64,000 nucleotides of DNA from Oculina patagonica (GCF_052425735.1 NC_135762.1:1116001-1180000), one strand, 5' to 3'. Shown: positions 8,526 to 32,218, counted from the stretch's first letter. Program-made: numbers and translations. Notes: generated by a model not told the origin, from the sequence alone.

Positions 8526-11387
8526 TTAAAATGGCTCCACATTCCCCACAGCAGGTATCAACTCGCAGTATATTTCTATTCCTCGCAGGAAAACTTTCTC
8601 GTTGAGGAATTCATTGTGATCATGAAGTAGGATTGGAGTGTTGTTCATTGGGAAAAAACCAATGGCGGGATAACCAAGCTATATAGAAAAAGAAAGAAAC
8701 AGAAAAAAAAATTAGCAGGTATACTAAACGAACTTACCGAGACATGAAACGCAAAAAGACAAAAACGCGCAAGAAAAAAATATACTAAGCGAAAACTGGA
8801 TACAAGAGGTCTCCCGCCTTGTCCCCAGTTTACCAGCACATTTTTTACCCGGGGAGGGCATATATATATGCGGAAACCGAGTTATGACGATCAATGGAGA
8901 CCCCCTTCCCAAAGGCTAAGCGCAAAGCAGCGTTTAACAGCATCCAATTGTATGACAGTCAGGATCACGAGAGGGACAGGAGCGACCACGGATCGGGGGC
9001 CTCTAGGAGGGAGGGGGGATAGTTCATGGTCCTTTGACCCCTAAAATATTGCACATTTTCTCTGCTTCCCGTTAATAAACTCAATTGCCCAATATCCTTT
9101 TCTCACGTGCAATAAAGGACCAGGTTCCCTTGTTCCCAAAAATCCTTGGGACGACCTCAGCAGAGGGGCGAGCACGAGGCAAGTTTACACGTCTAGGAAG
9201 ATGTCCCCTGTTTTATGAGTCAAATGAGTCTACGAGTAATGAGTCAATAAGTCAACGTCATTTTTACACAAAGTAGGTTATTATCTATTGAGCCTCGGTT
9301 TCCCTTTACAAGTAAGCTTATAGAAGCACTCTACTTTGCTTAGTTGCACTCCACTTTGCTTGCGGTAAAGGGTAACACTATTTTTAAATTAATAACTCTA
9401 ATTTAAGATTTGACTCATTGACTGATGACTCATTTGACTCATAAAAACGTTACTCTCGTCTACAAAGCGCACGAGGAAAACGCGAGCAAGTACTTCAAGA
9501 TGAAAGATGCCTACCTCACGTATATAACGACTATCCGTTCCTGCTGGGAAAATCTCTTTCTCTATTTTCATTTCCCTAAAATAATAGAAGACTTGTAATG
9601 AGAAGACAGTGGTGAAAAAAAAAAAAAACGAGGCAGAAAAGCAAAAGCGTAACCGCGAAGATTAATGTATAAGAACTCTGTAACATTAATTTGAGGCTTT
9701 TTCTACCATTTGCGTCCATCCTTGAAGCGTGACAAATTTAACACGTAGTTTTACTTTTATAACCTCGATGGTTTTGTCTGGTTACGTGTCACTTTTGACC
9801 AATGAAACGTTTGCAGTCAGGTCGCGAAATGGACAACGTTTTGGCGCCATACGATCATGTTTTCTTCAGGAGCTATCAATATTTTCAAGATTTGCCCACT
9901 GACTTCCATGAAAGTCTGCTCGGAAAATATCACTGCAAAAAGCCAAAGGGACCGTTACACTCGACATCCTACCGTGAATATATTTGAAATTGAATTAGAA
10001 ATTAATTTAACTTACATCTTTTTGCAAGTTGTACTGAAGGCTTTCCACCAAGGATCATCATCAGTGATCGGTGTTAACACGTGATTATCGCATTTCTGAA
10101 AACAAGAAATCAAAAATTAAAACAAATTAAAACTCGAGCGAAAGAATGACGACTGAGCCACTAGCTCAGTTAACAAATAACTAACCGAAGACACTAGCGT
10201 GGACATCAATTTGTCAAAAGTCACTTTCTGCAACTTGAGGAAATTTAAAGGGCAACTGCCTTTTATTTTCGCCATTTTTTGACGAGCTGATAAACATTCC
10301 CAGTTCATAGGAAAACCACCAATAATAGTTTAGTTTTACTTGACAAATGACAGGAACACATTAGGAAGTGAGGATGACAAACGATGGCGAGGATGGCACA
10401 GATTTCAACGTGGACAAACATAAAAATGTCAAGTGCTTCCCGCCTGGCTTTCATGTTCAGGGGTGGACGCATGGGGGAAGAACGGCTGATGACGAGAAAT
10501 AACAAGTAAAACAACAACAACAATGACAACAAACAACGTCAACGACGACAAGCAACAACAAAGTATGCTGTCAACAGTCCACTTCCTATAACCGTTACTT
10601 GCTTTTTTCGTCCATTACCGAGAACGGTCGAAAAAAGAGCCGAGAGCCCCGGTGCTTTAGTACACTAGTAATACTATACTACCTGCAAAAATTCATAAGA
10701 TACATCTTCTCCAGCCTCTTCACACCACTGCTTTACTTGATTCTCAAATTTCTGAAACAAGAGAAGAAAAATAAATAAGAAGAGTAGCAAGTTGCTTCCC
10801 TAAAGTTGCAATAAACTCCCTTTGGATGCTAATGCTGGTCCATTTGCAGGGCCCCACAATTTGACTCTGGTACCCATTTATACAAGGGTGGAGGGAGGCA
10901 CCGTGAGGATTGAGAATCCTACCCAAGAACACAAGATCCAGTGTCCAGTTCGCTATCCATTATGGCACCCCGCCCAATAAAAGATTATAACAGTGGTACT
11001 CATTAAAATTGAGTAAAGAAAAAAAAAAAAACATAAAAATGTCAATATTTACTCTACCTCAAGGTCCATTGTTGGTGCAATTCTTATGTCAAACACTAAA
11101 AGAAAGGATCATTCTATTACAAAAGAATGATAATTTCACACCAGTGTAACAAAAATGTTTTAAAAATGCTACAGCAAGCTCAAGGGCGTAGAAGTCAAAC
11201 CAGAGGGTTTTGAAGATGAATTAGGTCCACCGAAAGCATTTGTAGATGACAACAAAGACGAAGACTGAGATCCAACAACAACAACAACCCTGAGGGCCAG
11301 AGGACTTTTTTTTTTTTTTTTTGCAGGGAAGACACTATTTGTGAGCGGCGATCAAAGATCGCGGCTTCTTCTCTTTGTTCCGCCCAC

Positions 11388-11420
<33 letters not shown>

Positions 11421-14400
11421 GGAACCCAGGGTACATTGAACAGCGTGAGGGAATTGGAAAGCCACATTGATCACAAATCCATGCCGGCACGAGGAATCCT
11501 AACATGTACATTACACTCCGGCTTAGGAGTATCTTATTAAAGCATGATACCATTAAAGCATAAACTCCTGTACAAAAATAATTACCTGATGACATTTCTG
11601 ATGGTACTACATTAGCCTGGACACCACCCTTAAGAAAGAAATTTCAACAACAATAATTATTTGGTAAATTGACAGTTATTGACAAGGCTTCTTTTTGTAT
11701 TAGATTTCAATATAATATCCAGCATGCTCAGATTAGTATGAAAAACCAACCAACAAACAAAAAAATCCAACCATACAAAAGTGAAATTAATATGATGTTG
11801 TAAATAGGCAAGTCTAGATCTGTGACTGAATTGTTTTTCTTTTTACCTCAGCAACTGTCCAGTTAACTGTAGTGACATCTCCCAATCTCAGATCAGCATT
11901 TGAGTTCAACCTTGTCAAAGATTAAAATACCAAGGCTAAAGGATAAATAATCTATGCATAAAATATGTATTCTCTTGTAAACTGTATTAACTAAAGGTGA
12001 TCATTATCGGAGAAAAATGCCAATGAAAGTTTTTTTTTGTTGAACTGTTGGATCAGGTAATATTCCAGACTGTAATTGAGAACTATATTCTCTACCCCTC
12101 CAAAAGGAAAAAAAATATAGAAAAAAATATTGAAGCCCTTGACAAGAATTAGGTTGGAATTGTTGAACAGTACAACCTAAACAACTGATTTCTCAGACCT
12201 CTCGATAACTTGAATTAAAAGTATTATTTCCCTTGGATTTTGTTCACCCAGTCAAACACTGAAATTTTAACCTCTGATTTGTTGACCAATTTGCGTTTTC
12301 TATGGAAGTTTGGGAAAACAATGGGGTTTCTCTGTCTGTACTTGCACATGATCGATAGTCCTACCTCTTCTTTTGTTCATCCCTGAAAGCTGTAAATGAC
12401 TGAACAACTTTACACTGTAAAAGGAAACTTAAGTTAGTATAAAAGTCATGTATTTCATCTTTCTTTTAATTTTGAGTTGTTCTTTTTGATGTTTAAGTTG
12501 AAGGAAGCAGACACTGAATGTGAGAATGCAGGCCTTCCATGAAACACAGCCACAACAAGGTCAATTAGTTAGAAAAAGAAGAAAATGTTATTAGAAATGT
12601 ACTCACCATCTTTTCAGCAGCTGTACTCTCAATAAACCTGGAGCCATGACCAGGTTGGCCTTTGCAAGTAACCTTCACCCCTAAAAAAAAACAACCGATC
12701 ATGAGTCAGTTTCACAGGCTATGAGCTCTATTACACCAGGGCTGCAAATAACAGTCAGTCATCGGACATTGGTAGACCAAAATTTGTTCATGTCCCACGA
12801 AATCCCAAGTGTGGTTGGACATGACGTCCGGACAATTATTACTATTCTCTCGACCATTTTTCTTAGCAGTTTCTGTGTTACAACAACAAGCTCTTAAACA
12901 ACAAGCTCTTAAACAACAAGCTCTTATTATAGTCGAGAAAGTAGAGCTCGACCAGTGTCTCCACCGCCATATTGCAATCAAAAATCGCGACACATTTGCG
13001 GACAATGTTTTGATTATGAATCATTTTACGGCAACAATGAATAAAAATATGTCTGACTACAATTTTGTCTTGTCTGACCAAGATTGTGTCTTAGTACGAC
13101 ATATGTCCGTTCAAGTGAAAAAAATTATTTGCAGCCCTGTTACACTGTATGTAGAGGGGGAACAGGGGCATCTGAAACTGATGCCTCCCATGACTTTTAC
13201 TCCCACCTCTAGCCTCTTTCTGTAGCCATTCCCTCCTCTTTATCTCATATATATTGCGAGACTATAACAAAATACATGCATTCATAATACCCTGTTAAGT
13301 GCATGGCTTGATCGACTCAATGAAGAAGATTGTTTGAGTTCCAGAATGCTCAAGGCACTGACTAGAGGAAAAAGGTCATTAAAAATGCAAGAAAATATTG
13401 CTGTTTAAAGATAACTACTTACACCACACAGATCTCTCTCCATAAAATATTGTGAATGAATCTGTTGGGTTTGCAAGTCCTGGTGTAAAAGTTAATCAAT
13501 GAAGACACAAATCATTATCACTGTATCTTACAAGATTAGAAAATATTTACATACATGTACTGTTACAAAAAAATTGTTTGTAAATGCGATAATTATAAAA
13601 TTTTTAATAATTATACTTTTTGAGGGATGTAAACAATAGGTGGAAGGTGAAAAAAAAGCCACCTGAGGACTTGATTCTTCTGGCTTAAGTAAAGACTGTG
13701 TCTGGCTAGATCTTTCTTTTAATGAGACCCAAATTTTCACCTATTGGTGAAGGGGTGACAAAAAATTATAAGAAATTGGGGCCACACCTGGACCCCTCTT
13801 GGAAGACTAGCCCAGGACACAAGCGATGGAGAGCAGAAGTCATCAATGGCCTAGGCTCAATCCATAGATGGGCCTGACCGAGTGATGTAATTTACTTAAT
13901 TTATCCTCAAGCAAATGGGGCTTTTTTTGATCTCTAGCTTAAATGGCTATTGTATTGAGTTCACAAATTTGCATTATCTTTAATTTTTGTAGATTAACTT
14001 TTTTTGCACAGCTTCATTGTAAATAGGTCAGTACCCCACTTTATAAATTCTGTGCTTCTTACGAGTATATATTTTAAAGCTAAGATGTACAAGTCGTAAA
14101 AATGAATGAAAAAGTACAATTAGGTATACTAAAAACTAAATTAATTAAATATTTATTCTATAAAAATTAGAAAAAAAAAATACTGCATACCTTCATCCAA
14201 AGCAAAACCAAGGTTGAATGACTTAAAATCATCTGATTTCAGAAATTCTCTCATTCCATCTCCACCAATTTCTTCATCTATGTTATGAAAAACACAAAAA
14301 GGTCAACAAGAGAAAGTAATTCAAGATGCAGCCTTAAGTAGTTAAGGTTGCAGAAAACAATACATATTAAAGCAACATTTTGATACATGTGGCATATATT

Positions 14401-17400
14401 ATTATCAGCCAATGCCGGTGTCAAAGTTCCATACAAAATCTCATATTTTGCCACTGAGTATTCCTGTGACATTAGCCTGTTAAATTAGCAAGGTTACTTC
14501 CTGACAGCCCCCCCCCTCCCCTGCCCCATCTCCCAGACAGAGTAAGGATGTAAAAGAAACCCGTTTTTTCTGCTTGCCCTTTGGACCAGTTGGAACTATT
14601 CTGTGCTAGCCTTTAGGCCTTTCTCTGCCAGTATCCGTACTTCATCTGCCAAGTCCAAAAATATTACTTGCCTGATGGGCAAGTGATGACTAGCCAGACA
14701 GAAACTGAGCTATCAGACAGGATTTTCTTTGCACACCGCAGACAAGGGTTAAAATCCTACTTGCTACTTCAGTGTCCAGTAGCTGTCTCATAATATAAGA
14801 CAGACATAGACTGAGTGGAGTGCCCTGAAAGTTTTTAGAGAAAAACCAGTGCAGCACTAAAACATGCAGATACCTGGAACAAAAGTCATGTGAATTGTTC
14901 TGAGAAGGGTCACTCCCTGTGACCGCAGCTTTCTTATAGCCTCAATGTACCTAAAGGACAGTGCAAATAATGACAAAAAGAAACAACATTAGTTCCTGCA
15001 TGAGTACTATTGTATAGCAGAAGTATGTACATAATTAATATAAATTGAGAAGAAAATATATTAAATTATTCAAATATAGTATTCAAATATATTAAATGTA
15101 GCTGACATCCCAAGCTCAAACCCCTTTGTCGGATGTCACTGAGCCATGCACTAGTCGGTAAGTCTGAGTTTAGGCTAAAATAATTTTCTCACCAGCCATT
15201 TTCTAACCTGCAATCAGACTTATTATTTACAATTTTCTAGACATTATCTGATGGCCTCAAAAATATTGCTTTAATTTATTTAATAACAACCCTCCAAGTT
15301 TATTTTTTTCCTTAGTGGCCATTTGGCCACCAACTGTTCAAGTTTGGTTGCCAGTGAAAAATTTTAGTCACTAAATTAGGCTCACGCTATCAATCCTTTT
15401 TTTCAATTTTAGTCACCAGGCTGGCAACTTCAGTTCCAATTAAGTCACCAGTTCCAAAATTTTAGTCGCCATGGCGACTAAAATAGTCTTAACTTGGAGG
15501 GTTGAATAATTAAAGCTAAGAAAGGAAATTAAATACTTACTGTATACCGACACATTTCATATCCTGACAAAAAGGAAGGAAGAAACCAGGTTAAAAAGAT
15601 TATTACGTTTATTTATAGTAACACAGCAGCTCTGAAAGCCAAAAAATGTCCAAAGTATTGAATGATGATTGTTTGAAAAAATAGCAGGCTTGTTATGCAG
15701 GCCAATAATTTAATACCGTAAAATTCGGGTTACATAACCCCCCGCCTATAAGCCCCCCGGTTATAGGCCCATCTACCTGGAAACAAAAAAAAAATCTGAT
15801 TATAAGCCCTCCCAGATATAAGCCCCCCTCTGCCGGATGACAGTACTGAACAGGGCTAAATGTTGCTTTATTATGCGTTTTTAACTTAAAAACGTATTTT
15901 GATCAACACTCCCATGGCCCATTTCAGAATGTTTTTTTTATTCAGCTTATAAGCCCTCGCAGATATAAGCCCCTCCACTTATAAACCCACCCCAAAACCC
16001 TTATGAAGTTGTATAAGTCCAGGGCTAATAACCGGAATTTTACGGTATTCTTCATACTGGTAGGAAAATTATTTTGTGCTTGTATTCAAGCAGCATGTTG
16101 CAAAAAAATTTTTTAGAACCAATCTATATTTATGCTGGTTCTCCAAAAATAATAATAAAAAATGAGAAACTAATGCCAGGGAAAATATAAGCAAACAATT
16201 TCTTACTTGACTTCCACGGGCATAAATATCACCATTTTCTGTTTTGTGGGCAGAAAAAGGTTCATATGTCCAATGTTCCTATAATAATAATAATAATTTA
16301 AAACAAAAAAATTAACTAAAATGAGTCACATCATGATTCCAAGATTGGAAAAATTTAAATATACTAAGAGAATTGTCCAATGGCACTCATTAAAAAAATA
16401 TATAGAATTAAATTCTTAATCACTAGTAAAATCTAAAAATTAATGGCAGTTATTAACTTACTGAACCTGAGGTTTAAAGCACCTGTTGCCAGCTGTCTCC
16501 TATTTCCTAGCTTCTGGAAAAGGGAAAAGATCCTTTTTCCTGCCACAGATTGAAATAGGAAATGACTGCATGCAGGCTAAGCAGCTGGAAAGTGGCACTC
16601 GTGCGAGGGCCTGTTCTCCAGCACAATTTGCAGGGGGTTTGAACCCTGGTGTTTAATTTTAATATCAAAAGGTTTAATAATTATAATTTTATTCTCAACT
16701 AGAAAATAATAGAAAAACCTAATCTTTATGAATATATGTTTTATTTTACTTTGTGTGATAAAATACATGCATGCAAACTTGAAACTTACTGGAAAGACAG
16801 GAACTACATCTATGTGACTGTTTAACATAATGGACGGCAAACTAGGATCTCTTCCTTGCCATGTTATGACAACTGCTACAGTTTTACCAGCATCTCCCTG
16901 GTGTCAATGAAATTCAAAGTTGAAAATAAACAATTTGTTTATTTCAAAATAACACACAGGTAAGTGATTATAATCAGCTTAACCTTCCATGAGCAGACAG
17001 CCTTGGGATCAAGAGAAAAGTTATGACAATGAGGACATAACAAAATTGAATGTAGTTTCACTTTAATCAGCTAGCACAAGGGATTTGTTAACTATATTCA
17101 TTTAAGTGTGTTGTTCTTTGTGGAGGGGGATAGGGGGCAGGAGCCCAGGAGAAAAGGGGCAGGAGACAGGAGAATAGAGAGCGGGAAGTGTGATTTCTTA
17201 CTAAAGGTGGTGGAAACCGGGAGAAAACACATAAAATTTTGGAACATTTTATCATATTTTGCAATAGATATGGGACAAAGGTATGAGAGGCAGGAGGTGT
17301 CCCCCTGTCCCCCCTTCTTTGGAACTCTGGGTCAGGTTGTGGTTATGTGATGCTGCCGTTGTACATGTAAGCATCAAGAAACTGAAAATTAACTCATGAA

Positions 17401-17567
17401 AATTCTGCCTTTTTGGTATGCTTCCTATCTGACCATGTTACAACCTCTGCCTTACCCCTTGGACCCTTCCTATTAAACTCCTACAGCTATCTAATGCACC
17501 TATCAATGGTTTGCCCCAGGATGGGGGGGGGAGCTGGCAACCCCAGGGGAATTTGACATTGTTTGGA

Positions 17568-17600
<33 letters not shown>

Positions 17601-20445
17601 AGTGTATGTCAAATTTCACATATCTCCTCTTAAATTTCTAACCCTGCAGACCATTTTAGACGTCAAAATCCCTACCGTTGAAGAGCTTCACGATGTCAAA
17701 TTTTCGGTGGGTTGGCCACCCCCCCCCCCCAATCCTGGGCCAGAGCATTGATAGGTGCATAACCTATACCTGCCAACTCTCACGCCTTAGGCGTGAGTCT
17801 CACGCCTGCGAGTTGAAAACTTCGATCTCACGCCAACTCACGCTTACGAGCCAATTTCTCACGCCTAGTTGAAAAATGTGAGTTATTACAACCATAAATA
17901 GAACACTTTCCAAATATGTGAACTCAAACCAATGTGAGAAACGAAAACCCCATGTAAACTGAGTTAATGAAGATATTTTCCCCGAAATCTCAGAGTTTTG
18001 ACAAGAAAAGCATTGTGTGGTTCCAGAAAATATCCATACCCCCACCACGGAGGGTATTTCACGTAAGACCCCCCACCTCTCTGGAATTTCCGTTTTTGTT
18101 AAGAAAAATAAACCCCCCCCACCCCTCCGGAATTTCCAAAAGTATATTGCGTACCCCCCAGCCCCTCTGGAAAAAAAGATAAATTGTACAATGCTCTAAA
18201 TTTTAGGCCACCTCTCTTGTAAACAGTTACAGTGTATAACTGATCGATCGGAAGATATGTTAGAACGATACATACGTTACATGTACTGCTGAAGACAAAA
18301 TAAGAAATTTCCTCAAAAGTAAACAAACAAAATATCTGGTAGTCACTTGTCAAATTACCTTGTTGTATAACCATCCATCCCTTTTCATTCCAATCGCTTT
18401 AGAAAACCGCTATTAAAATGTATCAGAACACAGATTTGAAGTGTTGATATAAACCATAAACATTCACCGTAAACGTGATCGCAAAATCGCTAATGCTCGC
18501 TGAGAAAGCAAAATTTAACAGGAAAATTACAAACAAATAGCCAGAAATAACAAAACCATGTTAATCTCGAGTTTCTGACATCATTACACTATTTTCATCG
18601 CTAATAAACATGAAACTTTTCACAAACAAGGACGATTTTCCTTCGATCGAACGTGAAACAAGCAACCCTTGACACCAGGGTAGCCGGTCATAACGCCCCC
18701 AAGATAAAACGCCCCTGAGACATAACGCCCCCTTTAAGACATGACGCCCCCTATTGCGATTTATATATTCAGAGAAAGATCAGAGAAGAGAAGGATCCGA
18801 GGATGTAATAAAATCAATAAATGATATGAACTACTTTAGTTTATTGGCCTGTTTGCGTTGCAATTCATCCGTTAATGGCAATTGTGATTCTTCTGTTTTT
18901 TTTTACTCGATCGGTGTCGCTCGATCCATGTGAGCAACGAGTAGTAAGATGAATAACTATGTAAAGATACTTACCTTAATTTTTACGGTGCGATTCCATT
19001 GTTTAACTAGGTTACACTTAGTTCACTTAGTTTCTCACTCGGTTTTACAAGTACATGTACGAGGCAAGGATAAAAGCTAAGGTAATGAAAAGAGAAGAAA
19101 AAAAAGGAAAGAACAAGAACCTTGGATCGGTCGAACCCGCTCACTATAATCTCGTTTTTTTACGATCGAAAACTGAAAAATTACGTTCCTGCTATCGTTA
19201 TCATAAAATTACAAATAAAATTTGCTTTCTTACAATGGGGACATCATGTTTTATATGGGGCGTTATGTCTTAAGATAAGGGGGCGTTATGTCTTATAGGG
19301 GGCGTTATGTCTCGGGGGCGTTTTACCTTCGGGGCGTTATGACCGCAATTCGACACCAGTGCCTTTCGGTCAAACCACGTGACAAGTTTCGGGGGACTGG
19401 TAACAAGTAATGGCGGACGAACGAACATGGAGGATTTCAGTGAAATTATTTGCTTTCAGTGTGCTTTCAGGAGAAAGAAAACCCGTTTTAAATGTAAAGC
19501 GATTGTGAATCAAGAACCCAGAGTGCTATTTTTGCTATGTAAAACACTTGTAGAGTAGGTAAGAAACAATTTTTGAAACTAGTTTGCACTGCATCAAACT
19601 TGACCGTCTGGAAACATAATTCCACTGGCAACCCCCCCTCCTCTTCGGAATTTCCTGTGCCCTTGACCCCCCCACCCCTCTGGAATTTCCAATTTCCTCC
19701 GTGGTGGGGGTATGGATATTTTCTGGAACCACACATTGAGAATGTGGTCGTGTTTAGCAAACACGTTCTGGGACTGTGTTCGGGATATGTTCGGAACGTC
19801 TTCGGAATACTTCGGACATCTTCGGGAATGGTCGTGTCATCTCCGGAAATCCTAGCACTCTCAGGATAAAAATCTCACGCCTTTGACCCAGAAAAAGTTG
19901 GCAGGTATACATAACCCCCTTTTCTTCTGGGCCTCCATGCTTTATGGCCACCTCTAGCAATCTTCCACTGGTACTTGACAGGGTTTTCATGAATCTCACT
20001 GATTCTAATTCTGTGCACGTGTGCCTGGGAATTATCTCACTAACTGAGGGGGGAGGGACAGGATGGTAAATCTCCCTCCTCCCTACTTTTTGAGCCGATT
20101 TCTCCCTCCTCCCTATCCTGTTCCGCCCCCCTCCTAACTGTTTGCTGTTTAAATGTAAAATGTTAACTACAGTTCTACTTACTAACCTTAATACATTTAA
20201 ATGGAAGGTCGAGTTCTTTTGCAATCCTTTCAAGGAAAATGATAGCACTTTCTGAAATGGGAAATATAAGAATTTAATAAAATGTTATTTATTACACCCC
20301 GAAGGAAGACAACTCGCAGGTCTGTAGTTTAGACCAAGCTACACTTACCATAGTCCGGATTTGGCTGAACAGTTTTTATCCTCAAGTACTCTCTAAAAAC
20401 TGTAACGGAGGGGTCTTCTTCCACTTTCGCCCGCTTGGCCGCCAT
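8526..20445 (-). CDS. ACY1: Aminoacylase-1 (M20 metallo-amidohydrolase), 405 aa, 17 coding exons
   Basis: Exons 20445-20349, 20251-20187, 16897-16790, 16278-16207, 15563-15541, 14950-14874, 14277-14191, 13479-13423, 12680-12607, 12414-12365, 11910-11847, 11628-11586, 11095-11058, 10751-10683, 10095-10016, 9575-9515 and 8678-8526 sum to 1218 nt, all GT-AG and in frame. Motifs [64 protein letters not shown] on the - strand at 8401-8406. Confidence 0.97.
10795..10960 (-). mobile_element. tRNA-derived SINE fragment
   Basis: Reverse copy of the core CCTCCCTCCACCC...TATAAATGGGTACC shared with SINE copies at ~26355, 42132 and 60336. Confidence 0.6.
12737..13138. mobile_element. hAT-like MITE with an internal 15-bp tandem repeat
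   Basis: TIR CAGGGCTGCAAATAA / TTATTTGCAGCCCTG, flanking TTACAC on both sides, (ACAACAAGCTCTTAA)x3 inside. Confidence 0.7.
15714..16047. mobile_element. Tc1/mariner-type MITE
   Basis: Termini TACCGTAAAATTC / GAATTTTACGGTA, TA-flanked, with internal TATAAGCCC repeats. Confidence 0.75.
17765..19909. mobile_element. Three nested non-autonomous DNA transposons in ACY1 intron 2
   Basis: Outer TIR TATACCTGCCAAC / GTTGGCAGGTATA flanked by CATAACC; a related shorter copy lies at 62629-63032. Middle element 18014-19735 with TIR TGTGTGGTTCCAGAAAATATCCATACCCC. Inner element 18679-19351 with CATAACGCCCC repeats and 8-bp TSD GACACCAG. Confidence 0.85.
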
Positions 20446-20832
20446 CTTTGCAAAAAGTGACTCCCCTCCCCTCCCTACTGCCTCTGACCCCTGGCAGGCA
20501 AGTATTCACAAGCGATTTACAAGGGGGATACCCTTAAGAATACCGAACGGAAATATTAACCAAACGAATGGTTTTCCCTGTGACTTGCATCATAAAATTT
20601 CTAGTGATTTTTTTTATCGATATTATAATAATTAACAGACCTTTAAAATTTACAGACTATTTTTTCTACTAAAGATTATTGATTCCACCCCACCCTGGTT
20701 GGGTTCCATTTTATTTTCGCGCGCCATGCGCATTGCGCCTTATTGTGGAAGTGGGTTTCTTTCTTTTAATTGTTTTTATTTCAGTTTCATCTCTAATAAG
20801 CAGCCTTTCTTTGGAAGTACGTTATAGGACAG
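20438..20832. promoter_or_regulatory. Bidirectional promoter shared by ACY1 and the HDAC gene, including the likely non-coding HDAC exon 1 (donor after 20832)
   Basis: ACY1 ATG at 20445 sits in a YY1-type AAGATGGCGGC. E2F-like TTTTCGCGC, NRF1-like GCGCCATGCGCA and ETS GGAAGTG lie at 20714-20753. Donor CAG|GTGAGA at 20832/20833. Confidence 0.65.
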
Positions 20833-21610
20833 GTGAGATTTTATATCAGTTTTGGTTTTCTTATCGCAGTTATTGTAATCATTTACAGAAACGCAAGAAA
20901 ATTCGTTTCCGCTCATACTTCAGTGACCTCCGATCTGACCTGATCAAGTGAGCTGGAAATGCGGAGATTTTTCTACGAAAACATCGTAACAAACAGGGGA
21001 ATCTCTGTTTTGAACTGAAGATCCGTTAAAAACACTAAATATTTCAAGTAATCGAGGAAAATCAGATGCTTTGCTAGTTTGCCATGAAAAGCCTAGTTCA
21101 GTCACACCAGTGACATAACGGCAAGGTCACGCAAACTCAAAAAAACACCTCACGTTGATGTTTTATGTCCCCAGTGACCCAGTGCGAACAACACAACATA
21201 AGAACATAGCAGGAACGTTAAAACATAACCATAATGAAATAAGGGAAAAACTGATCTTTTTTTATGTCATGTCGCTAGTGTAAACCAGGGTAAATAAGCT
21301 TACTAGTTACATTCAGAGATGGCGGAGAGTTTTGAAACGTGGGGGGACTAAGACTGTCCCAAAAATACTTGGCAGGTTTTCATATTTGTAGCAACTTTTT
21401 ATTTTCTGACCGAAGATTTCTGAAGATTCTGTGATTGTTGTTCAAAGCCATACAAATGTTTCCGATCATTTTTTTAACTTTTCCGAAGATAAACAAAGTT
21501 TACCGAAGACTTCCAAGTAATTTTCTATAGCCCCCCCCCCTGCCCCACCGCCTATGACATTGTACTGCTGGTACATTCATATTTCTCCTCTACTTGTAAC
21601 TTACAGAATA

Positions 21611-24600
21611 ATGTCATCTGGGGATGAAGAAAATACTAATAGCTTGCAAAACTTGGTAAGTTTTTACATTATTTTGCAATACTGTTGTTACATGGCAGGG
21701 GTATTTTGCAGAATCCTGAACGCAGAATGCAGAATGATGCTCTAACTAGCAAATTAAAGCTAACCACAACCAATTAAAGCCAACCACAAGCAAACCAGGG
21801 TGAAGCTAACTGCAAGCAAACCGGGTTGAAGCTAACTGCAAGCAAACCGAAATGAAAGCTAACTGCGAGCAAACCAAAGTGAAAGCTAACCACCATCAAA
21901 CTGCCCGCTGACCATTATTCTGCGTTCTGTATTCTGCATTCTGCAAAATACCCCTGCTGGTCGTAACATTGTACTGTAAATAAAGGGGATCACCATTATC
22001 CTATGACTTGTTTGGAGCTCATTTTTCGGCAGACCCTTGAAGTTTTCACTACTGGTATATTGACAAGGGGATTGCTGGTGTTGAGACAGTTAAAAATTTA
22101 ATTATTTATTGCTGGTCATGTTGTTCTTATTCATTAAACTTTTAATTATTCCATCGTGCTGTTTTTTTAGCTGAGTCATCCCAACTGATTACCTGCATAC
22201 ATGTATTCAGTCGTAGTGTACCATTGGCGGATCTAGGGGAGGGGCCAGGGGGGTCTGGGCCCCACCTTATTTTTAGGGAAAACCAAAGCCAACAGTGCCG
22301 AGAAAAAAATATTAATTTCCAGAGCGGGCCCCACTCTTATTCCAGGTTCTGGATAATCGGGCCCCCACTTACCTGAAGGTCCGAATCCACCACTGTGTAC
22401 TGTTATGTACTTGTATATGCTTGCAAACCTAACACATTCTCTTAATTATTACTAGAACGTCAATGAATCCACAGACAAGTCAAAAAGGTAACATGTTGTT
22501 AAAATGTATTTAATAATGTTGTTATTCCTTACAGAACAATACAACTGTGAGGTGTTGTTAGTTTAATGTGTGAGCTACCAATCAAAACAAACAATGGCTC
22601 AAATTGGCATTAATAGCCGATTCCCTCTATAGCGCGCGCCTGCAGGGAATTACGGTAGTTGTATTCATCAAATCTTGCGCAAGACTCAGCAACGTGCATT
22701 GTTGTGAGTTGCTGAGATTTGATGAATACAACTTCCGTGATTCCCTGCAGGTGCGCGCTATAGAGGGAATCGGGTATTGGCTGGGGCACACTGCCCTGTA
22801 TTAGTTTAGCCTGTGCGACTTCTAGTGACTGCATGACAAAAGAACCCCCTTGTCTGTCCAGCACTGTAAGCTGATATTATGAATTGGACAAGAGTTTTGG
22901 TTAGCAGGTGATATTTAAAGGCAATGCAACCAATAAGCTTGGTGGAAGTTTTTGTGCAGACTTAACATACTGCACCAGACAGGAGTGACCCTAGTTTGCT
23001 AATAAAAATAATAGCATAAAACAAATCCAATCGTCTCTTCTATGCCAAAACCAAAGCAAAACTTAAATTAAAAAAAATTATAATTTCTTATTGTTATTTT
23101 TTGTTGTTACTTTTAGAACAGGAATTGTCTTTGATGAAAGGATGAAAAAACATTTCAATGTGTGGGACGTGTAAGTTGTTTGTAGATGCCTTCATGCATT
23201 ATGTATTTAGTGCTGCACATGTAATTTAACTTATAATCCACTTCATTCAAGAAAAGAAATTTATTCCATGAAATATACTTGTCACAAAGTCTCTTTTTCA
23301 CTAGAGACCTCAATGTCATCGGTATTACAGCATTTTAATTTGGTTCCTCAACAAACTACAGACTTTGCAGAATAATTATTTCCAAACCTCACATGCATTG
23401 TATAAAAAGTAATGGAAATACAAAAGTTGAAAGTTATTAGAAAACTAATCTTGATGCTATCCTTGATGCAAATTTTGATTTTTAGAACTCATCCCGAGGT
23501 CCCAGACAGAATTCAGCGGCCCTATGACAAACATAAGGAGTACGGCCTGCTAGAAAGGTGCCAGGCACTCCCAGTAAGCTAAGTCAAGAGCAAATTATTG
23601 TGTTCTACTCGACATATTTCTTTGCATGTTGGCTGACAGAAAATATAGTTTTGTTTCATTGGCAGTGGATGACAGGAAACTAGAGCCCCATTTAAAATGT
23701 AACTGCCATCTCACAAATAAATAATAATTAAGATTTAGGTATAAAAATTAGTAAAATTATAATTTTATTTTATGTGTGATGACACATAAAAATTATGAAA
23801 TGGCATTTCATAATTTTCTACTGTGATTTTGTATGAATGGATGTGAGCATTCACATTTTTTTTAGAAATTGACTGTCACATTTTTTTTGGAATTTGACTG
23901 TTTAGATAAAAATTGATAAATCTGTTGTGTTTTTTAGTCGCGGTTTGCTACAGATGAAGAGCTTCTCTGTCAACATAGGTATGTTTTTTAAAGACAGGCT
24001 TTTAATCAATGAAAGTTAGGGGGTGGCATAATTATTATCATGGTACCTTCAAGATTGTGAGACTGAGAGAGAGAAATTATATCTTTTCTGTGGGTCTGCT
24101 GAAAGTTTCTTAACCATGCAAAAATATTGAGTCTATGAGACCATGGATCACAAAAAAATTATGAGATGGCGAGATTCATAAAATTTAATTTATTAAGTTC
24201 TGTGAGCAGGGTGCAAAGCAATTCAATTTTCCAGCTTGTCCTTCGGGCAAGCTTTAACCAGGATGTACTAGCCCAAAGTCATTTTAACTAGCCCAAAAAA
24301 AAATCCTTATAAGCATGATTAATTTCCTTTAAAAATTTCCCTGAAAACTTTCACTTCCCCAATGGGCAAGAGAAGGATAAAATCCACTAGCCGGCCGCAC
24401 GGCCGCAAATTCCACTAGCCCCAGGCTATTGGACATGCAATTCTTTGCACGCTGACCAGTAAGACAATTTTTTGAAGGATTATTTGCCACTCCTTATATA
24501 GAATTGTTGACAAAAACATACTAGACCATTACCTTGAACCATGATTTTAATTGAAAAAATTACTTACTTATTGTTTAACTACTATGATTTAACCCTATTG

Positions 24601-27600
24601 AAAATTAATCTGACTCATTTTTGGAAATATCATCTTCAGTATATTTATTAACGAAGTCAACATTTTTTATTATTAGTTTTATGTTATTTTCAACATTGAA
24701 ACATCAAATGAGTACCAGCTCTTTCGACCACTCTTGCACAATTTGTGAAAAATAATTAGAACTTAATACTATCTCACTGCAAAGATAGTTCTAACATTGT
24801 TATGAACCCGATCTTTACAAGTTGTGAACACACAACGTTACCTTACAATGTTACAGCAAGGAACATGTTAACAAGATGAAATCCACTCAGACCATGACAA
24901 AAGAGGAACTTTATAACATAAGCGCATGTGATTATGATTCAGTCTACATGAGTGAGGTGAGAAGTGGCTGGTTCAATAGACAGCTTTAATTTGTTAACCA
25001 TTAGTGGTAATCTAATAGCCCTGTACCCAGAATAATAGAATAATAGCAGAGTGCCCAAAGGCTCTTACTGTCACTTGCATCTAAGCGTGAACACTCGCTG
25101 CCAAAACATGATTTAATAGGGTATCAAACGTTGCTTGATTCGACATCAAATGTTGAAGTTTAGCAGACCACAACGACAATTTTCGCGCTCAAAATGTGAC
25201 CAGAAGAAGTGACTGCGTGCCTGTGGCACCCAGGCTTTGCTAGAGCACATCTCTGTGTACTAGTTCAGCTTAACTAAATCTGAACTTCCTTAATCCCGTT
25301 TTAACATTCACATCTCTGGTAACATTTCTATGTATTGTCAGCCAACAACATCTGGTAGATATGAAGGCAACTCAAACAATGTCAAAAATTAATGAAAAAT
25401 TGCTCGCAAAAGGAAAAGCCGTGACATTTGAGCCTGATATGTACTATAGTCAGGTAAAATGCTAATTACTGATCTAGCTTTATTTTTCATTAATTATTTA
25501 AAATGCTGATGACTGTTCTTGCTTTTCATTAATTTTATTTTGCAAAGAACCATTTACTGATTAAAATTAATTCAAATTAATAATTAGTAACAAGACAACT
25601 GAACAATATTTTTGTGTAATAAAATTATTCTGTACAATGGATTTCGTTGGCAGAGTTAATTTACATTGCACATACAGATTTTGCAATAATTTCAACACAA
25701 TGTATGTTTAGAATTTTTGATACTGTTAATCTGAATTTTGTATGATGGGTAACATGCATGATTTTAGAACAACTTGAATGTATATTTTTCTCCCAAATGG
25801 AGTACAAGTGTTTAATATGGGAAGTGAAGGTTTCTTTATCTTGTTAACAGCATGCCTGTGAATGCGCTCGTCTTGCGTGTGGTTGTACATTGTCTGCAGT
25901 GGAAGCTGTTGTAACGAATAAGGTAACAGAAATCCGATTTGGTAAAATTTCAAATGCGATCTTTGGTTACAAATTTGATAAAAACAAGCTTTTGATTACC
26001 AGTCTAGTCTTTAACAAGTAATGACATTACTCGTTTAGGACTACAGATTGGTAGTTAAAAGATTGTTTTTATCAAAGTTTTAACCAGAGATCGTTTTTGA
26101 AATTTTACCAAATGTCTTACCCTGATTACTCATCTATTTTTAAAAGAAATGAGATAATTTGTCAGATTTTTTGTTTGCAAAATTTTTAACGAAGTCATGC
26201 TCAGTTACTGTTAAGATATACGGTATAAGTATTTGGTGATCCTTATCTGCTTTGTAAGGGCCTTTCATGATAAATAAGTCAAATGATAACATCATGGTCA
26301 AGAAGACTTGTCCAATTTAATGAAATCAATGCATTTCTGATTACACATTTGTGAGAGGCGCGGCAGCCTATTGGTTAGCTTAGCGCACTGGACTCTGGAT
26401 CAAGCGGTCCAGGTTTGATTCCTGGCCAGGGTCATTGTGTGCTCTGTTCTTGGGACACTCTACTGTCACAACGCCTCTTTCCACCCACAATGAGCGCCAA
26501 AAGTGTTGAGACAGTCGGCACTTTTTGAGTACCTTGGACAAATTTTACCCCTCACCCCTTCAATATAACCCCCTCGCCCCAAAACAATTGATGTTGTATT
26601 TGCTATCTGCAAGACTTGCCTCGTTTGAGTACAACATTGAAAAGGGGGGAGGGGGAGTGGTTCAGAAGCGGCAGCAGATTAAAGGTGAAAAAACGGGAAT
26701 TTTAAATTAGTATCAATTTCATCCAATTGTCTCAAGGACTTTTGACGCCCATTGCAGGTGTATAAATGGGTACTGGCGAATTTTGTGCTGGGGGTAACCC
26801 TGGGATGGACTCGCATCCCATATCCAGGGGGGGAGTAGAAATACTCCCATGAAAAAACCAGTAAAAGCTCCACTAGGGGCCACTAGGGCCACTAGCCTCG
26901 AATGCAGACATTATTTCAGTTCATCACCTGGGGGTGGGGGAATTTTTGGAATTTTATGGTATTGATTTAAGGCTAATTATGTATGTGCAAAGTAGAGATA
27001 GGTAATATGATAATTTATATACCAGTGCAATGTATTTAATGCAGTTTATTACATTCCCCTATTGTATTTTCTCAGGTCCAAAATGCAGTGGCTATTGTAA
27101 GGTATGGTATTCTGTTGCTGTCCAACATCTAAGAGTAATAAATTCATAAGCAACCATGTTGACTTGGATATGAGATGATAGAATGATAGAAAATGTCTGA
27201 CAGCATGGCAGCAAAACCAAGTGCTGTGATCTTCACTGGGCATTACTGATTACAGTATTATTAACAGTCATTGGTACAGTAATTGAACACATAACACTGT
27301 TACAATTAATGTTGTTGACCAAAGCTTCAAGTTGACATGGCGAGTCGAAAGGTAGTGTATGCGCTGCTGCACATGCTGAATACTAATGAGATATAACTGC
27401 AATATGGCAAACATATTTTTTAATGCGTTTTCTTTCTTCTTTCTCTATGGACATTTTTTTATCTTTTATTTTCATTTGTTAGACCACCTGGGCATCATGC
27501 TGATACTGAGTTTGCAATGGGTTACTGTTTTTTCAATAATGTGGCTGTTGCCGCAAGAATAGCTCAAAAGAAATGGAATGTTAAGAGGTAATCATGAACA

Positions 27601-29497
27601 AAAAAAAATTTTGAAACTACTGTCCTTTGTTTTACATTTCTATTTTGAATATGATTAATAATTGTTTAATATACTATTATGTGATAATAATTATTGTGTG
27701 ATCATTTAAGGGTGCTTATTGTGGACTGGGACATTCACCATGGCAACGGCACTCAACATCTCTTTGAATCTGATCCAAGGTGTGGCTGGTAGCTAAATAA
27801 ATCAAACATTTGCAAATTTGCGTAATTATGCACAGAATTACAGGTTAGCAGGTGGACCAATAAACCAACAACAGTCAAGATAAAAAATGTTTGATCTGAC
27901 TTTTTTACTTCTCACTTTGTCATGTTTCGTTCTTTTCTAGTGTTTTGTACTTCTCCATACATCGATATGACCACGCCCAGTTTTTCCCGTTCTCCACTTG
28001 TGCTAATTACGACGTAGTTGGAAGTGGACCAGGGAGAGGATTTACAGTAAATGTACCATGGAACAAGGTTATTGATAATGTGTTTTATTCTTCATAATTG
28101 CTTGGCAATAGGTGTTAATATGAATAATAACTATTAATATTATTTTTTTAAAGTCCCATGCTTGAAATTTTGATTAGAATTGCCTTTGATTGTTATTACA
28201 TTTTGTAATACTTGATTTAGTAGCAAATTGTCTTCAGTTTGTGATTTCCATTATTGTGATTATCTCTCTGTGTGAGAACATATTAAATATTGGTTAGAAG
28301 GTCTGAATGTTGCCCTTCTTTATTACGTAAACAGAAACACATGGGAGATGCAGATTACCTGGCCGTCTTCCATCATATTTTACTTCCTATCGCTTATGAG
28401 GTAAATTGTTTGTGTTTGAGTATCAAAGTGTACATCCTAAGCAAAATCTGTGCTATGTTAGCCAGAGTTAATAAGTGGCAATGGCGCCGCAAAGTAAGGA
28501 AACTGATCCATTGAATACTGGTAACAAGTACATTGGCTGACATGTGATTCAACAGTGATTAGCCTAGTATATGTTTTGTTAGATGTATAAAAATGTATGT
28601 TCAGTAGATGTTTGCAAGCAGGCTCACATTTGGCAATATGCATGAGTTGAGAAGCCATAACAACAGGTGAGTGATTGGCGAAGTTTGGAGTGGAAGCTGG
28701 AATACACTCAAGCATATATATTTTCAAGCCTTAGCCTGTTCACAGGGTACCCACCCTTTGCACCAGATACCTTANNNNNNNNNNNNNNNNNNNNNNNNNN
28801 NNNNNNNNNNNNNNNNNNNNNNNNNNNNNNNNNNNNNNNNNNNNNNNNNNNNNNNNNNNNNNNNNNNNNNNNNNNNNNNNNNNNNNNNNNNNNNNNNNNN
28901 NNNNNNNNNNNNCCTTCAAGGCACCATTAACATGTTTACTGAAGACTTAAGTCACTCTTCTCCTCTTTTATTTTTAGTTTGAGCCTGACCTTGTTCTGGT
29001 ATCAGCTGGGTTTGATTCTGCTCGAGGAGACCCTAAGGTAGAGCACTTGTTTTTTTAGTTTTTTGTCACTCCAAAACAATTTTTGCAACCTGGTGTTTTG
29101 CTTCACATCATCGTTATTCTTCTGTTATATGATATGGTTGGTTGGTCTTTAATAAGCTCTTATTGTTTTGAAAAAGCAAAACAAAGAACAATGACACTTG
29201 AAAATGTTTAGACTGAGATAGGCAGAGATTGTTTGTCTTTCAAATGTCTTTCAAAGTTGTTCTTCCGATTTCCCAGAGTTTTCTTGCGTCATATAAAGAA
29301 TCTTAAACTTAAGGTAGCTTTTCATTCGCAGGGACTTTGTGATGTGACTCCAGAAGGATACCATCACCTTACAAGAATGCTGATGAATTTAGCAAATGGC
29401 AGAGTAGTCATTGTTCTTGAGGTACTGCATCTACTACACTTAAACTTTTCAAAATTGGGGTTACAACTATTTAGAATTTTAAGCTCACTTCTCAAAC

Positions 29498-29534
<37 letters not shown>

Positions 29535-32218
29535 TAACCGTGAAGGAGGTTTTGATACCCGGTCTTAATTAGCATAGATATTTACGATTTTATTTCTCCG
29601 TTTACTCCGTTCGTTGTTTTTGCTTCGATTGAGAAGATATATCAAATACCCGAGACAGTGTTTCATCGGCTATCCAAACACCTCGAATTTTGTCAAAAAT
29701 ACTTCGCTGCGCGTCTTATTTTCAACTCTCTGCTTGGTGTTTGGATATCCCGATGAAACACTGCCTCTTTTGTTTGATATATTGCATCAAAATCAATCCT
29801 TCTTTGCCAGTTTTGGTTGAGGTGACCCCCCCCCCCCTCTAACCTGTGTATATCATCTGCCCATTACCCTCAGAAACAATAGGAGTAGACAGATGAGTAC
29901 AATTGATCACTTCTTCACCTCAGTCCAGTGCTTTCCTTTCCAAAAATATCAGTTACACTTAATTATGTTTTTCCCAGGGAGGCTACAATCTCAGTTCTGT
30001 CGCAGAATCCATGTGTGCCTGCACCTCTTCTCTTCTTGGAGATCCGTGTCCACGTCTGGATGGATCTATGACACCTTGTGACAGGTAACATGACGATACA
30101 GCTGCCTTCCATTACTTGCCGTTAAAAGTTGGGGCGAGCACATGGCGAGGGCCTGGGGCTTCATAGGATGAACTGAAGTTATATTGCTGAAATTAAGATT
30201 GTGATCAGCGAGAGAGAACCTGACCTTTTTAACCAACATATCAAACCTGCAATGGGATCGTCCGTGGAACTGACTCTATTAAAGTGGACTATGTCACGTA
30301 ATTTTAGGCAATTTCGGCACTGACCAGGTCGGTCATATATTAACTGAAATATCACAATAACGCCTTAAAACTGTAGAAGAAATCAAAAGAAACACAAAGG
30401 TCAAACAGGGGCATGGATGGGCAAAATTCGAGAAGATTAAAACGGATTGCGTCCAGGTTGTTTGAAAGTGTCATTTAAAATGCTTGAAAATCACCCTTGC
30501 TTGTTATATGGCTGTGATTTTGCCAATAAAAGACTTTTTCTCTGCCAATTTGAAGTTTAGAGCTCTTAATCAACGAAAATAAATAGAATTTCCTAAAATA
30601 CCGTGACCTAGCCCCTTTAACGTGACTATTTTCAAAACTGAAAGCTACTGAGCTGTACCTTAACGTAAAACTGTTAATTATACTGTACGCGGCTTTAACT
30701 TTACTCTAATACCTTGTTTTTTTTACACAATTTATAGTTGTTTTGAGACAATTGTGAACGTTATTGGTGAGCACAGCAAGTACTGGAAGTCGCTTAAGAT
30801 TGCAGGTTAGTTTAGCAATACGTGTGGTCGTTAGTGTAAGCTATAGGGCTGCAACGATACACCGGTGCACCGGTCAATCACGATATTATTTGTCAAGATA
30901 CGAATATCGGTATTTGAACGAAATATCGCAGTATCGTGAAACAATAAAATATTCTTAATTAAAATTCAGAAATTACTGTTTTTAATTACTTTTTACCCAT
31001 GTCAAAGCCCTCAATAGCGATTTATTAAAGTTAGGGACTAGGAAGTTCCATTCTGCATCACTTTCGATCACATATTCTTTAAAGATCGAACAAATTAGTG
31101 TCAACTGACACAGCCTTGTGTGTCCATAAGCAAAAAACATGCGGCTCTTGAAAATTTCACTTTGCAAGTAAGATTTCGCTGCTAATAAAGTGAAAAAAAT
31201 TGGGTTACCAAAAGAATTAAGTAAAATTATAGCATTTGTCAACTGTAAAATAATGTTGTATCGTATCGTGTATCGTATAGTGGCGCCTATATCGAGATAT
31301 GTATCGTATTATGAAAACATGTATCGTTGCAGCCCTAGTAAGCTAGAACTCGAGTAGGATAAACGTGTAACAGAAACATGTTCTGGGCTGACATTTTACT
31401 CACCGTGCGTATGTTTGTTTTGCAATTTACAGGTCACTGATCTACAACTTCGTGTGTATGTAAATGATTTTCTTTTTTTTTTTATTCAAGCCCTTCTTAG
31501 TGGAAATGTACAAGAAGTCGAGGATAAACCCAAAGAGGAGAAGAAAATTGAGTGAGTATCTTATCTGTGCTTTGCCTTGACAGGGAAGTGTCCTTTGCGT
31601 TTTGGATGATAAAATTTTGTAGTACAACTGAGAGGAAAAAGCGAAGAGTAGCAAAGAGTCACATGTTTAAGTTTTCAGCACCAGCATTTACTGATTTTTT
31701 TAAACATTTTTTGTGTCATGATAATTCCAACTGATTTTAAATGTGAATTGATCATTCGTTTCTTTGTGTTTTGTGTTTTAGATATCCAAAACTACCAGCA
31801 GACTTTACAGGTGTGAACAGTTTCCATGTTAAAACGTGTTAGCAAACAGGCTCTTCTATTTCCTTGGTTGTTTGTTATCTTTTTGCTAGTGAGGGTAGCC
31901 TGCGTAGCAGGCGTAAAAAGGGGGAGAGGGTTCGAAGGAGGATTGAGAGAATTCTCTCCTCCCCTTTTACGCCTGCTACGCATGCTACAGTCAGGGTAAA
32001 TGAAACGTTCGTTGAATCCGCGAGACGCACGGAATGCAGATGGTGTCAAAAGTGGGATTGACTTAGTCGGATAAAGAATGACGAAATTGGAACACTTTCA
32101 TGAAGCACCTTAACCCAGTAGAAAAATCGTGTTTTCTTTATTGTTAATCAAAACTTCTGCTGTATCCTAAACCTAACCGTCTTTTGTCTCTCTGTTTTTG
32201 ATTTCAGCCTTCTGTTGA
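21611..32218 (+). CDS. Class IIb histone deacetylase (HDAC6/10-like) with a single catalytic domain, ~416 aa, 19 coding exons
   Basis: Exons 21611-21655, 22456-22487, 23117-23170, 23486-23573, 23938-23978, 24857-24956, 25851-25922, 27076-27101, 27483-27587, 27711-27779, 27941-28067, 28335-28400, 28978-29037, 29332-29421, 29978-30084, 30738-30805, 31491-31551, 31782-31810 and 32208-32218, all GT-AG and in frame. Motifs [54 protein letters not shown]. The last three exons are less certain. Confidence 0.92.
21695..21957. mobile_element. MITE with internal ~25-bp tandem repeats
   Basis: TIR GCAGGGGTATTTTGCAGAAT / ATTCTGCAAAATACCCCTGC, internal (AAGCTAACTGCAAGCAAACC) repeats. Confidence 0.75.
22612..22778. 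mobile_element. ~170-bp hairpin element, copy 2
   Basis: Same arms as 6590-6760, with a diverged inner part. Confidence 0.85.
26355..26910 (+). mobile_element. tRNA-derived SINE interrupted by a small TIR element (~26489-26752)
   Basis: Head GAGGCGCGGC...GGTTTGATTCC, core CCACCCA|GGTGTATAAATGGGTACTGGC split by CAATGAGCGCCAAAAG...CTTTTGACGCCCATTG, and tail region CATCCCATATCCAGGGGGGAGTAG. Confidence 0.75.
28775..28912. other. Assembly gap (138 N) inside an HDAC intron
   Basis: Run of N. The flanking exons join in frame (PIAYE|FEPDL), so no coding exon is needed in the gap. Confidence 0.99.
30279..30620. mobile_element. TTAA-flanked MITE (Kolobok-like)
   Basis: Termini TTAAAGTGGACTATGTCACG / CGTGACCTAGCCCCTTTAA. 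Confidence 0.65.
30844..31337. mobile_element. hAT-type MITE
   Basis: TIR TAGGGCTGCAACGATAC / GTATCGTTGCAGCCCTA with a perfect 8-bp TSD GTAAGCTA. Confidence 0.9.

Follow-up and report, generated by a model that had tools for sequence, protein, structure and literature searches.

Introduction

The function of the CD1 domain of HDAC6 was long unclear, and a 2026 preprint now assigns to it the deacetylation of free acetyl-lysine. A gatekeeper lysine of CD1 (K330 in zebrafish, K353 in human) is what makes this domain specific for C-terminal acetyl-lysine whose carboxylate is free, while HDAC10 owes its polyamine deacetylase activity to a glutamate in that position (PMC5454378). CD1 cleaves free N-epsilon-acetyl-lysine with a kcat/Km of ~1900 per M per s, the change K330E abolishes this activity, and N-alpha-acetyl-lysine is a poor substrate (bioRxiv 10.64898/2026.05.22.727066). 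The hydrolysis of free or C-terminal N-epsilon-acetyl-lysine is shown there for human and zebrafish CD1 only, and ACY1 is not mentioned in that preprint. Here we describe a locus of the coral Oculina patagonica at which the gene for aminoacylase-1 (ACY1) lies head-to-head with the gene for a single-domain HDAC that carries the CD1 lysine. The window, i.e. the whole stretch of DNA analysed, comprises 64,000 nucleotides (GCF_052425735.1 NC_135762.1:1116001-1180000), and positions are counted from its first letter.

ACY1 is a hydrolase for N-alpha-acyl amino acids. Since CD1 acts poorly on N-alpha-acetyl-lysine and ACY1 acts on N-alpha-acyl compounds, the two enzymes would deal with complementary acetylated amino acids, and a salvage pair is biochemically plausible. 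The interpretation that we prefer, with a probability of roughly 0.4, is that ACY1 and this HDAC form a jointly acting, co-regulated pair for the recycling of acetyl-amino acids. None of the literature searched connects ACY1 with HDAC6, either through synteny or through metabolite genetics, or discusses the single-domain, lysine-gated class IIb architecture of anthozoans and placozoans. In human, ACY1 presumably adjoins neither HDAC6 nor HDAC10.

Results

ACY1 and HDAC form a compact divergent pair in the coral

ACY1 and HDAC are a real, expressed and ancient divergent pair, with a spacer of less than 400 bp in the coral (Table 1). The initial annotation placed the ACY1 start codon less than 400 bp from the first HDAC splice donor. 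The distance from this ATG to the end of HDAC exon 1 (donor 20832) is indeed 387 bp, and the corresponding joints are found in RNA contigs. RNA evidence was taken from the contigs of three probable RNA runs (X1, X8 and X12), belonging to three studies, which were aligned to 19900-25899. Both genes are expressed in all three. The ACY1 intron 20252-20348 is seen in contigs of X1, X8 and X12, and the HDAC joint 20832->21607 (GT..AG) in those of X1 and X12. As donor 20832 (...ACAG/GTGAGA, 20832 being the last exon base) is used in RNA joints, it is a real splice site closing a leader exon that does not code for protein; HDAC translation starts at the ATG 21611. The spliced contigs contain 20 (X12) and 26 (X1) letters upstream of this donor.

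One contig of X1 spans 20349-20832, from ACY1 exon 1 to HDAC exon 1; coming from an independent sample, it rules out that the adjacency is an assembly artefact. This run covers the whole spacer but introns too, and is uninformative on start sites. The raw poly-A run X23 contributed just three reads and is equally uninformative on transcript starts and ends. In the two cleaner runs, X8 and X12, no RNA covers 20500-20699, thus the ACY1 leader is short and HDAC exon 1 starts after ~20700. A contig of X8 (depth 195) stops at 20444. Both predicted starts fall within the 387-bp span, divergent and less than 1 kb apart.

The spacer 20446-20832 is AT-rich (38.5% GC) and contains neither a CpG island nor a TATA box. 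The small cluster of housekeeping-type motifs reported in the initial annotation is present: five of the 11 CpGs of the spacer are packed in 20718-20737, as TTTCGCGC then GCGCCATGCGC, both being consensus matches from a pattern scan. The exact AAGATGGCGGC is found as a single copy in the 64-kb window, versus 0.01 expected. In the salvage interpretation the two genes would be regulated together from this one short spacer, in which the consensus matches are YY1-type at the ACY1 start codon and E2F/NRF1-like upstream of the HDAC leader. The same features also suit another explanation, in which only the promoter is shared: both housekeeping genes would suffer if so short a divergent promoter were split by a rearrangement, and the two enzymes would be metabolically unconnected. 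The shortness of the spacer and the type of its motifs point in this direction. We regard promoter sharing as a genuine possibility, although we would not bet on it, and return to it with the synteny data.

RNA contigs reach very great depths (up to ~440) at 22500-22900, 24900-25300 and 19900-20100, where repeats lie in introns or flanking sequence. This signal probably stems from transposon copies that are transcribed at other genomic sites, and it belongs to neither gene.

Table 1. Coordinates of the features of the ACY1-HDAC locus
Feature	Position	Strand	Remark
ACY1 (aminoacylase-1) coding region	8526..20445	-	intact; splice-aware assembly, canonical sites
ACY1 exon 1	20349..20445	-	start codon 20443-20445; 5' untranslated region beyond appears very short
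YY1-type core AAGATGGCGGC over the ACY1 ATG	20438..20448	-	exact match
Divergent promoter region and HDAC 5' untranslated exon	20446..20832	.	387 bp
Compact CpG motif cluster: E2F-like TTTCGCGC, NRF1-like GCGCCATGCGC	20715..20740	+	just upstream of HDAC exon 1
HDAC non-coding exon 1, 3' end	20813..20832	+	at least 20-26 nt transcribed
Single-domain class IIb HDAC coding region	21611..32218	+	19 coding exons, 416 amino acids
Exons with PPGHH tandem His (H157, H158) and DWDIHHGNG (Zn ligands D195, H197)	27483..27779	+
Assembly gap (N run)	28775..28912	.	inside intron 28401-28977
Exon with Zn ligand D288 (GFD) and gatekeeper K295	28978..29037	+
Exon with catalytic Tyr (EGGY, Y328)	29978..30084	+

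Both gene models are complete

The names given to the two genes by the initial annotation stand, on PDB and Pfam matches. The minus-strand gene is identified from its sequence as aminoacylase-1 (peptidase M20A). Its model, obtained by splice-aware assembly, has 17 exons and 405 amino acids with no stop or frameshift; the reverse-strand ATG is followed by an ACY1-type N-terminus. The first junction of the assembled gene, found without RNA, is the RNA joint 20349/20251. Two exons match structures of human ACY1, namely the last one (1q7l_B, E 7e-17) and exon 3 (1q7l_A, E 2e-7), which includes the LNSH.DVVPVF metal site; all PDB matches for the tested exons are to ACY1. The model also carries the motifs QDMKC, DEEIGG, ALDEG and LLHDHNE, whose His, Asp, Glu-Glu, Glu and His we take to be metal or catalytic ligands from what is known of human ACY1. 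The M20 catalytic domain PF01546 is weakly matched by the last exon, and the colinear Trichoplax ortholog carries both PF01546 and PF07687 (M20 catalytic and M20 dimerisation). The genome contains one copy of ACY1.

The HDAC gene comprises 20 exons, of which 19 are coding, every intron being GT..AG, with the stop codon at 32216-32218. Its 5' part is supported by RNA, and the model was extended by homology and canonical splice sites. RNA contigs back the junctions of exons 1-8; beyond the first, these joints, all GT..AG, are 21655->22456, 22487->23117, 23170->23486, 23573->23938, 23978->24857 and 24956->25851. The translation is 100% identical, over the full length of 416 amino acids, to the deposited P0153 (hypothetical protein ACROYT_G017728, Oculina patagonica). 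Individual exons match Pfam Hist_deacetyl (PF00850). The catalytic set is complete (H157, H158, D195, H197, D288 and Y328), and H157, H158, D195 and H197 are invariant across all the groups compared (Table 2).

The assembly gap was considered as a possible hiding place for an exon. The gap-flanking exons, 28335-28400 and 28978-29037, meet at residues 275/276 (…AYE, FEPD…). Across this point the alignments with both catalytic domains of zebrafish HDAC6, CD1 and CD2, and with five orthologs are free of gaps. These contiguous protein alignments rule out a hidden exon in 28775-28912, hence no coding sequence was lost in the N run.

Two minor features of the gene are worth recording. Run X1 contains an alternative joint, 25453->25851, at depth 6 versus 43 for the main joint; 25083-25453 would then be an optional extra exon or a retained segment in HDAC intron 7. 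The protein ends in …P.DFTAFC, a tail with a C-terminal Cys encoded by two micro-exons, 31782-31810 and 32208-32218 (+). This Cys tail is kept in scleractinian orthologs (DFTAFC, DFTALC, DFIATC, DFTAYC), and is absent from the anemone, octocoral and Trichoplax proteins.

A predicted stand-alone class IIb domain with a lysine gatekeeper

The initial annotation described the HDAC as single-domain. The genome contains six Hist_deacetyl loci, one of them in the window, and no second Hist_deacetyl domain was found near the HDAC, the contig stretch having one PF00850 cluster. ZnF-UBP (PF02148) has four matches in the genome, none on the HDAC contig and none near any HDAC locus. HDAC is the only class IIb domain in the coral genome, in which neither a domain of the CD2 type nor a fusion of an HDAC with ZnF-UBP was found. 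With one domain in 416 amino acids and no ZnF-UBP, the protein is not HDAC6 proper.

Orthologs were searched among 1.8 billion representatives, with a one-exon query then with the full-length query. One-domain orthologs of 373-432 amino acids were found in Montipora, Acropora, Orbicella, Nematostella, Actinia, Actinostola, Xenia and Trichoplax. A search of a protein atlas yielded generic HDAC clusters and nothing more specific. The gatekeeper lysine proposed in the initial annotation is K295 (codon AAG, 29035-29037), within the motif GDPKG, and this motif is present in all the one-domain orthologs. The lysine and the length of the protein, too short, also rule out HDAC10, although the Acropora ortholog is named "polyamine deacetylase HDAC10-like" at NCBI.

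Table 2. Residues found at the diagnostic positions of the coral HDAC in the anthozoan and placozoan single-domain clade and in related domains
Position	Single-domain clade	CD1	CD2	HDAC10	Class IIa outgroup
Catalytic His-His, Asp/His/Asp, Tyr	complete	complete	present (Tyr 15/16)	complete	complete
Gatekeeper (K295)	Lys 9/9	Lys 8/16, Glu 8/16	Leu 16/16	Glu 7/7	not covered
Y167	Tyr 8/9 (= human CD1 Y225)	Tyr 11, Phe 5	Phe 16/16	Phe 7/7	Phe
N200	Asn 9/9	Gln 16/16	Asn 16/16	Gln 7/7	Asn
F226	Phe 5, Tyr 3, Trp 1	Trp 16/16	Phe 12, Tyr 4	Trp 7/7	Phe

The likeness to HDAC6 CD1 put forward in the initial annotation is partly confirmed: it holds for the lysine gatekeeper, but the coral HDAC is not a plain CD1, since it has neither HHGQG nor the Trp of that domain and is closest to CD2. 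Its PDB scores are 445 bits for zebrafish CD2, 418 for zebrafish HDAC10 and 394-408 for CD1, class IIa being well behind, and within one two-domain protein it is 56% identical to CD2 versus 51% to CD1. The flanks around the gatekeeper lysine are CD2-like. Near the N-terminus, …LQNLNV… can be aligned with the segment of full-length zebrafish HDAC6 that leads into CD1. A count of columns discriminating CD1 from CD2 gave four, too few for a vote.

In a maximum-likelihood tree rooted with class IIa, the single-domain clade joins CD1 and HDAC10 with a support of 97/98, the outgroup being one partial sequence of this genome on a long branch. In the approximately unbiased test, a clade outside all bilaterian domains, i.e. 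a split before the CD1/CD2 duplication, is not rejected (p 0.248). The coral HDAC is thus classified, on these alignments and this tree, as a stand-alone lysine-gated class IIb domain which splits off at the base of the CD1/HDAC10 lineage or below it and is neither HDAC6 nor HDAC10. As sole class IIb representative in anthozoans and placozoans, the single-domain lysine-gated enzyme is a variant architecture of known families.

These data bear on a rival view of the enzyme, according to which the HDAC acts mainly on proteins of the tubulin or cortactin type, like HDAC6 CD2, and is not restricted by its lysine to free-carboxylate substrates; this would be compatible with promoter sharing and also with the neutral survival considered below. 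Its standing as sole class IIb domain of the genome, its proximity to CD2 in identity and score, the CD2/outgroup states at N200 and F226, the CD2-like gatekeeper flanks and the LQNL motif resembling the leader of full-length HDAC6 speak for this view. However, the gatekeeper lysine is invariant in the clade while CD2 has Leu in all 16 sequences, and Y167 corresponds to the bulk residue Y225 of human CD1. Moreover, the lysine of zebrafish CD1 gives carboxylate specificity, and its mutation alters specificity (PMC5454378; bioRxiv 10.64898/2026.05.22.727066). We regard a mainly protein-directed enzyme as rather unlikely. A CD1-type activity of the coral HDAC is plausible, judging from one residue set in a CD2-like or ancestral background.

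The gatekeeper of CD1 is itself mixed. It is Glu (GCPEG or MDPEG) in the insect, most of the sampled mollusc and the hagfish sequences, and Lys in vertebrate-type CD1 and in Mytilus. As the polyamine deacetylase HDAC10 has Glu, a preference for cationic substrates may be suspected in many HDAC6 CD1 domains of protostomes.

The pair is shared with Trichoplax and absent from five other lineages

Synteny was compared in seven lineages (Oculina, Trichoplax, Xenia, Nematostella, Actinostola, Lottia and Mytilus), starting from the HDAC orthologs. In Trichoplax (L002) a 396-amino-acid gene with M20 and M20_dimer domains lies at 2857-7423 (-) and the HDAC ortholog starts at 10001 (+), i.e. the two genes are head-to-head. 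The M20 gene is ACY1, as it matches the coral gene exon by exon in a translated comparison. The Trichoplax HDAC is also colinear with that of the coral, exon by exon, and the first coding intron, after the …LQNL codon, is common to both. The initial annotation had envisaged that the adjacency might be found in this species only; Trichoplax has the same pair, which rules out a chance adjacency specific to Oculina.

The conservation of the divergent arrangement, also raised in the initial annotation, is nevertheless partial. It holds in Trichoplax, but ACY1 was not found beside HDAC within 10 kb in two sea anemones (Nematostella and Actinostola), the octocoral Xenia and two molluscs (Lottia and Mytilus). 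The adjacency is therefore dispensable. In Xenia, Nematostella and Lottia the head-to-head partner of HDAC is an ataxin-10-like gene, a CLC channel and a cyclin respectively; in Actinostola and Mytilus no gene was found within 10 kb upstream of HDAC, and no ACY1 exon was detectable. It is very unlikely that two phyla arrived at this 5'-5' pair independently, thus the simplest reading is that of an ancestral pair which was repeatedly broken. On this sample the ACY1-HDAC pair, present in two of the seven lineages, appears ancient and often broken.

The other partners of HDAC in Xenia, Nematostella and Lottia indicate that a head-to-head placement is typical of this gene whatever the partner, as promoter sharing would have it. 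Against promoter sharing, the partner kept in two phyla is an enzyme for complementary N-alpha-acetyl substrates, and the pair persists in Trichoplax though the spacer has grown there to 2.6 kb. Strict E2F, NRF1 and YY1 motifs gave none common to the coral and Trichoplax spacers.

A third explanation is neutral survival, the pair being an ancestral accident as yet unbroken in two slowly rearranging lineages. It would account for the loss of the adjacency in five of the seven lineages, and in Actinostola the PRA1 gene is still near HDAC while ACY1 is gone, as in ordinary piecemeal rearrangement. But ACY1 and HDAC are the only genes shared by the coral and Trichoplax loci, all the flanking genes being different, and their orientation has been kept for more than half a billion years, the time since cnidarians and placozoans diverged. 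We consider neutral survival improbable.

In the coral, the PRA1-family gene lies 3' of ACY1 (~5312-7520, -). Its Actinostola ortholog (L006:29045-31335, +) is located 7 kb 3' of HDAC. The PRA1-ACY1-HDAC neighbourhood is thus partly kept in Hexacorallia, the anemone having lost ACY1 from it and having HDAC inverted.

Two details concern the Trichoplax locus. Nearly half of its spacer is a tandem array of six copies of a 191-bp unit (95% matches, L002 ~8145-9291). The deposited Trichoplax model TRIADDRAFT_56890 is without a 22-amino-acid exon (KHMGDADY…) which is conserved in the DNA at L002:12549-12611; this is an annotation omission and not a deletion.

Other features of the window

The window is animal DNA with a GC content of 34-45%. 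Outside the ACY1-HDAC locus it contains a Gypsy-type retroelement with an open frame of 992 amino acids (35422-38400, -), which has RNase H and integrase domains and no match to a reverse-transcriptase domain. An exon at 40946-41296 (+) encodes a nearly complete caveolin domain (PF01146, E 1.5e-34).

Discussion

In the salvage interpretation, the HDAC with its CD1-like rim lysine would prefer acetyl-lysine with a free alpha-carboxylate, as zebrafish and human HDAC6 CD1 do. Together with ACY1 it would form a cytosolic module through which acetate, lysine and further amino acids are recovered when acetylated proteins are degraded. Several observations argue for such a joint function. The substrates are complementary, and of the genes at the two loci this pair alone has been kept in two phyla, its orientation unchanged. 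In the coral the spacer is compact, and each run contains RNA of both genes. The gatekeeper is Lys in 9/9 members of the clade versus Leu in 16/16 CD2, and ACY1 is present as a single copy. For the substrates themselves, for shared regulation and for selection on the joint function rather than on the promoter alone, these observations are hints.

Other observations weigh against the salvage interpretation. The HDAC is without the CD1/HDAC10 signatures HHGQG (Gln) and Trp after RY(D/E)xxxF and is closest overall to CD2; as the only class IIb enzyme of the coral, it may chiefly deacetylate proteins. The ratios of ACY1 to HDAC junction depth are ~0.8, 3.7 and 12, a ~15-fold spread over three runs in which contig depth is a poor measure. 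The absence of ACY1 within 10 kb of HDAC in the five other lineages counts here too, as does the Trichoplax spacer, which with 1.15 kb of its 2.6 kb occupied by the tandem array offers no tight shared promoter. Among conserved 5'-5' pairs many are functionally unrelated (PMC3514665), which equally favours promoter sharing. Finally, the functional story was chosen post hoc, from a scan of very many windows.

A broader scenario can be drawn from the salvage interpretation. The ancestral animal class IIb deacetylase would have been a stand-alone, lysine-gated N-epsilon-acetyl-lysine deacylase, linked to and co-regulated with ACY1 before the cnidarian/placozoan/bilaterian split; HDAC6 CD1 would descend from it, the protein-deacetylase roles of HDAC6 resting on CD2. 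We hold this scenario to be unlikely as a whole. If it is true, ACY1-HDAC would belong to the small number of metabolic gene pairs that have been conserved between animal phyla.

The free-standing lysine-gated domain is the only class IIb enzyme of corals, sea anemones, octocorals and placozoans. Its pairing with ACY1 in two phyla provides an independent evolutionary argument for a metabolic role, and the coral HDAC offers a natural single-domain enzyme free of the confounding CD2. If the coupling of the two enzymes is true, an ancient module for acetyl-amino-acid recycling would be defined; if it is untrue, the locus is a clean case of a divergent promoter pair retained across phyla.

Comparison with known systems

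Co-expression is enriched among conserved 5'-5' pairs, some of which, like HADHA-HADHB, are functional pairs (PMC3514665). The ACY1-HDAC pair resembles HSPD1-HSPE1 and HADHA-HADHB, whose products act in one pathway (PMC3514665), by a 5'-5' orientation kept across phyla and by a short spacer. These two pairs occur almost universally and have measured co-expression, whereas the ACY1-HDAC pair is patchy (2/7 sampled lineages) and a candidate only for co-regulation.

The coral ACY1, with its 405 amino acids, is like human ACY1 (PDB 1Q7L) in belonging to the M20 family, in its dimerisation domain and in its metal/catalytic motifs, with no notable difference at the sequence level. The coral HDAC is like HDAC10 in being a class IIb protein with one active domain, but differs from it by a Lys instead of a Glu gatekeeper and by having no C-terminal pseudo-deacetylase domain (416 versus ~670 amino acids). 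From HDAC6 it differs as a stand-alone protein of 416 amino acids, without CD2 and without ZnF-UBP, and from CD1 in particular by the Asn of HHGNG, by a Phe for the Trp and by being closer to CD2 overall. In the tree it groups with CD1 and HDAC10, an earlier split not being rejected by the approximately unbiased test. It shares with the vertebrate CD1 (zebrafish K330, human K353) the class IIb fold, the catalytic residues and the Lys gatekeeper, and further the Tyr at the position of human Y225 and the LQNL leader.

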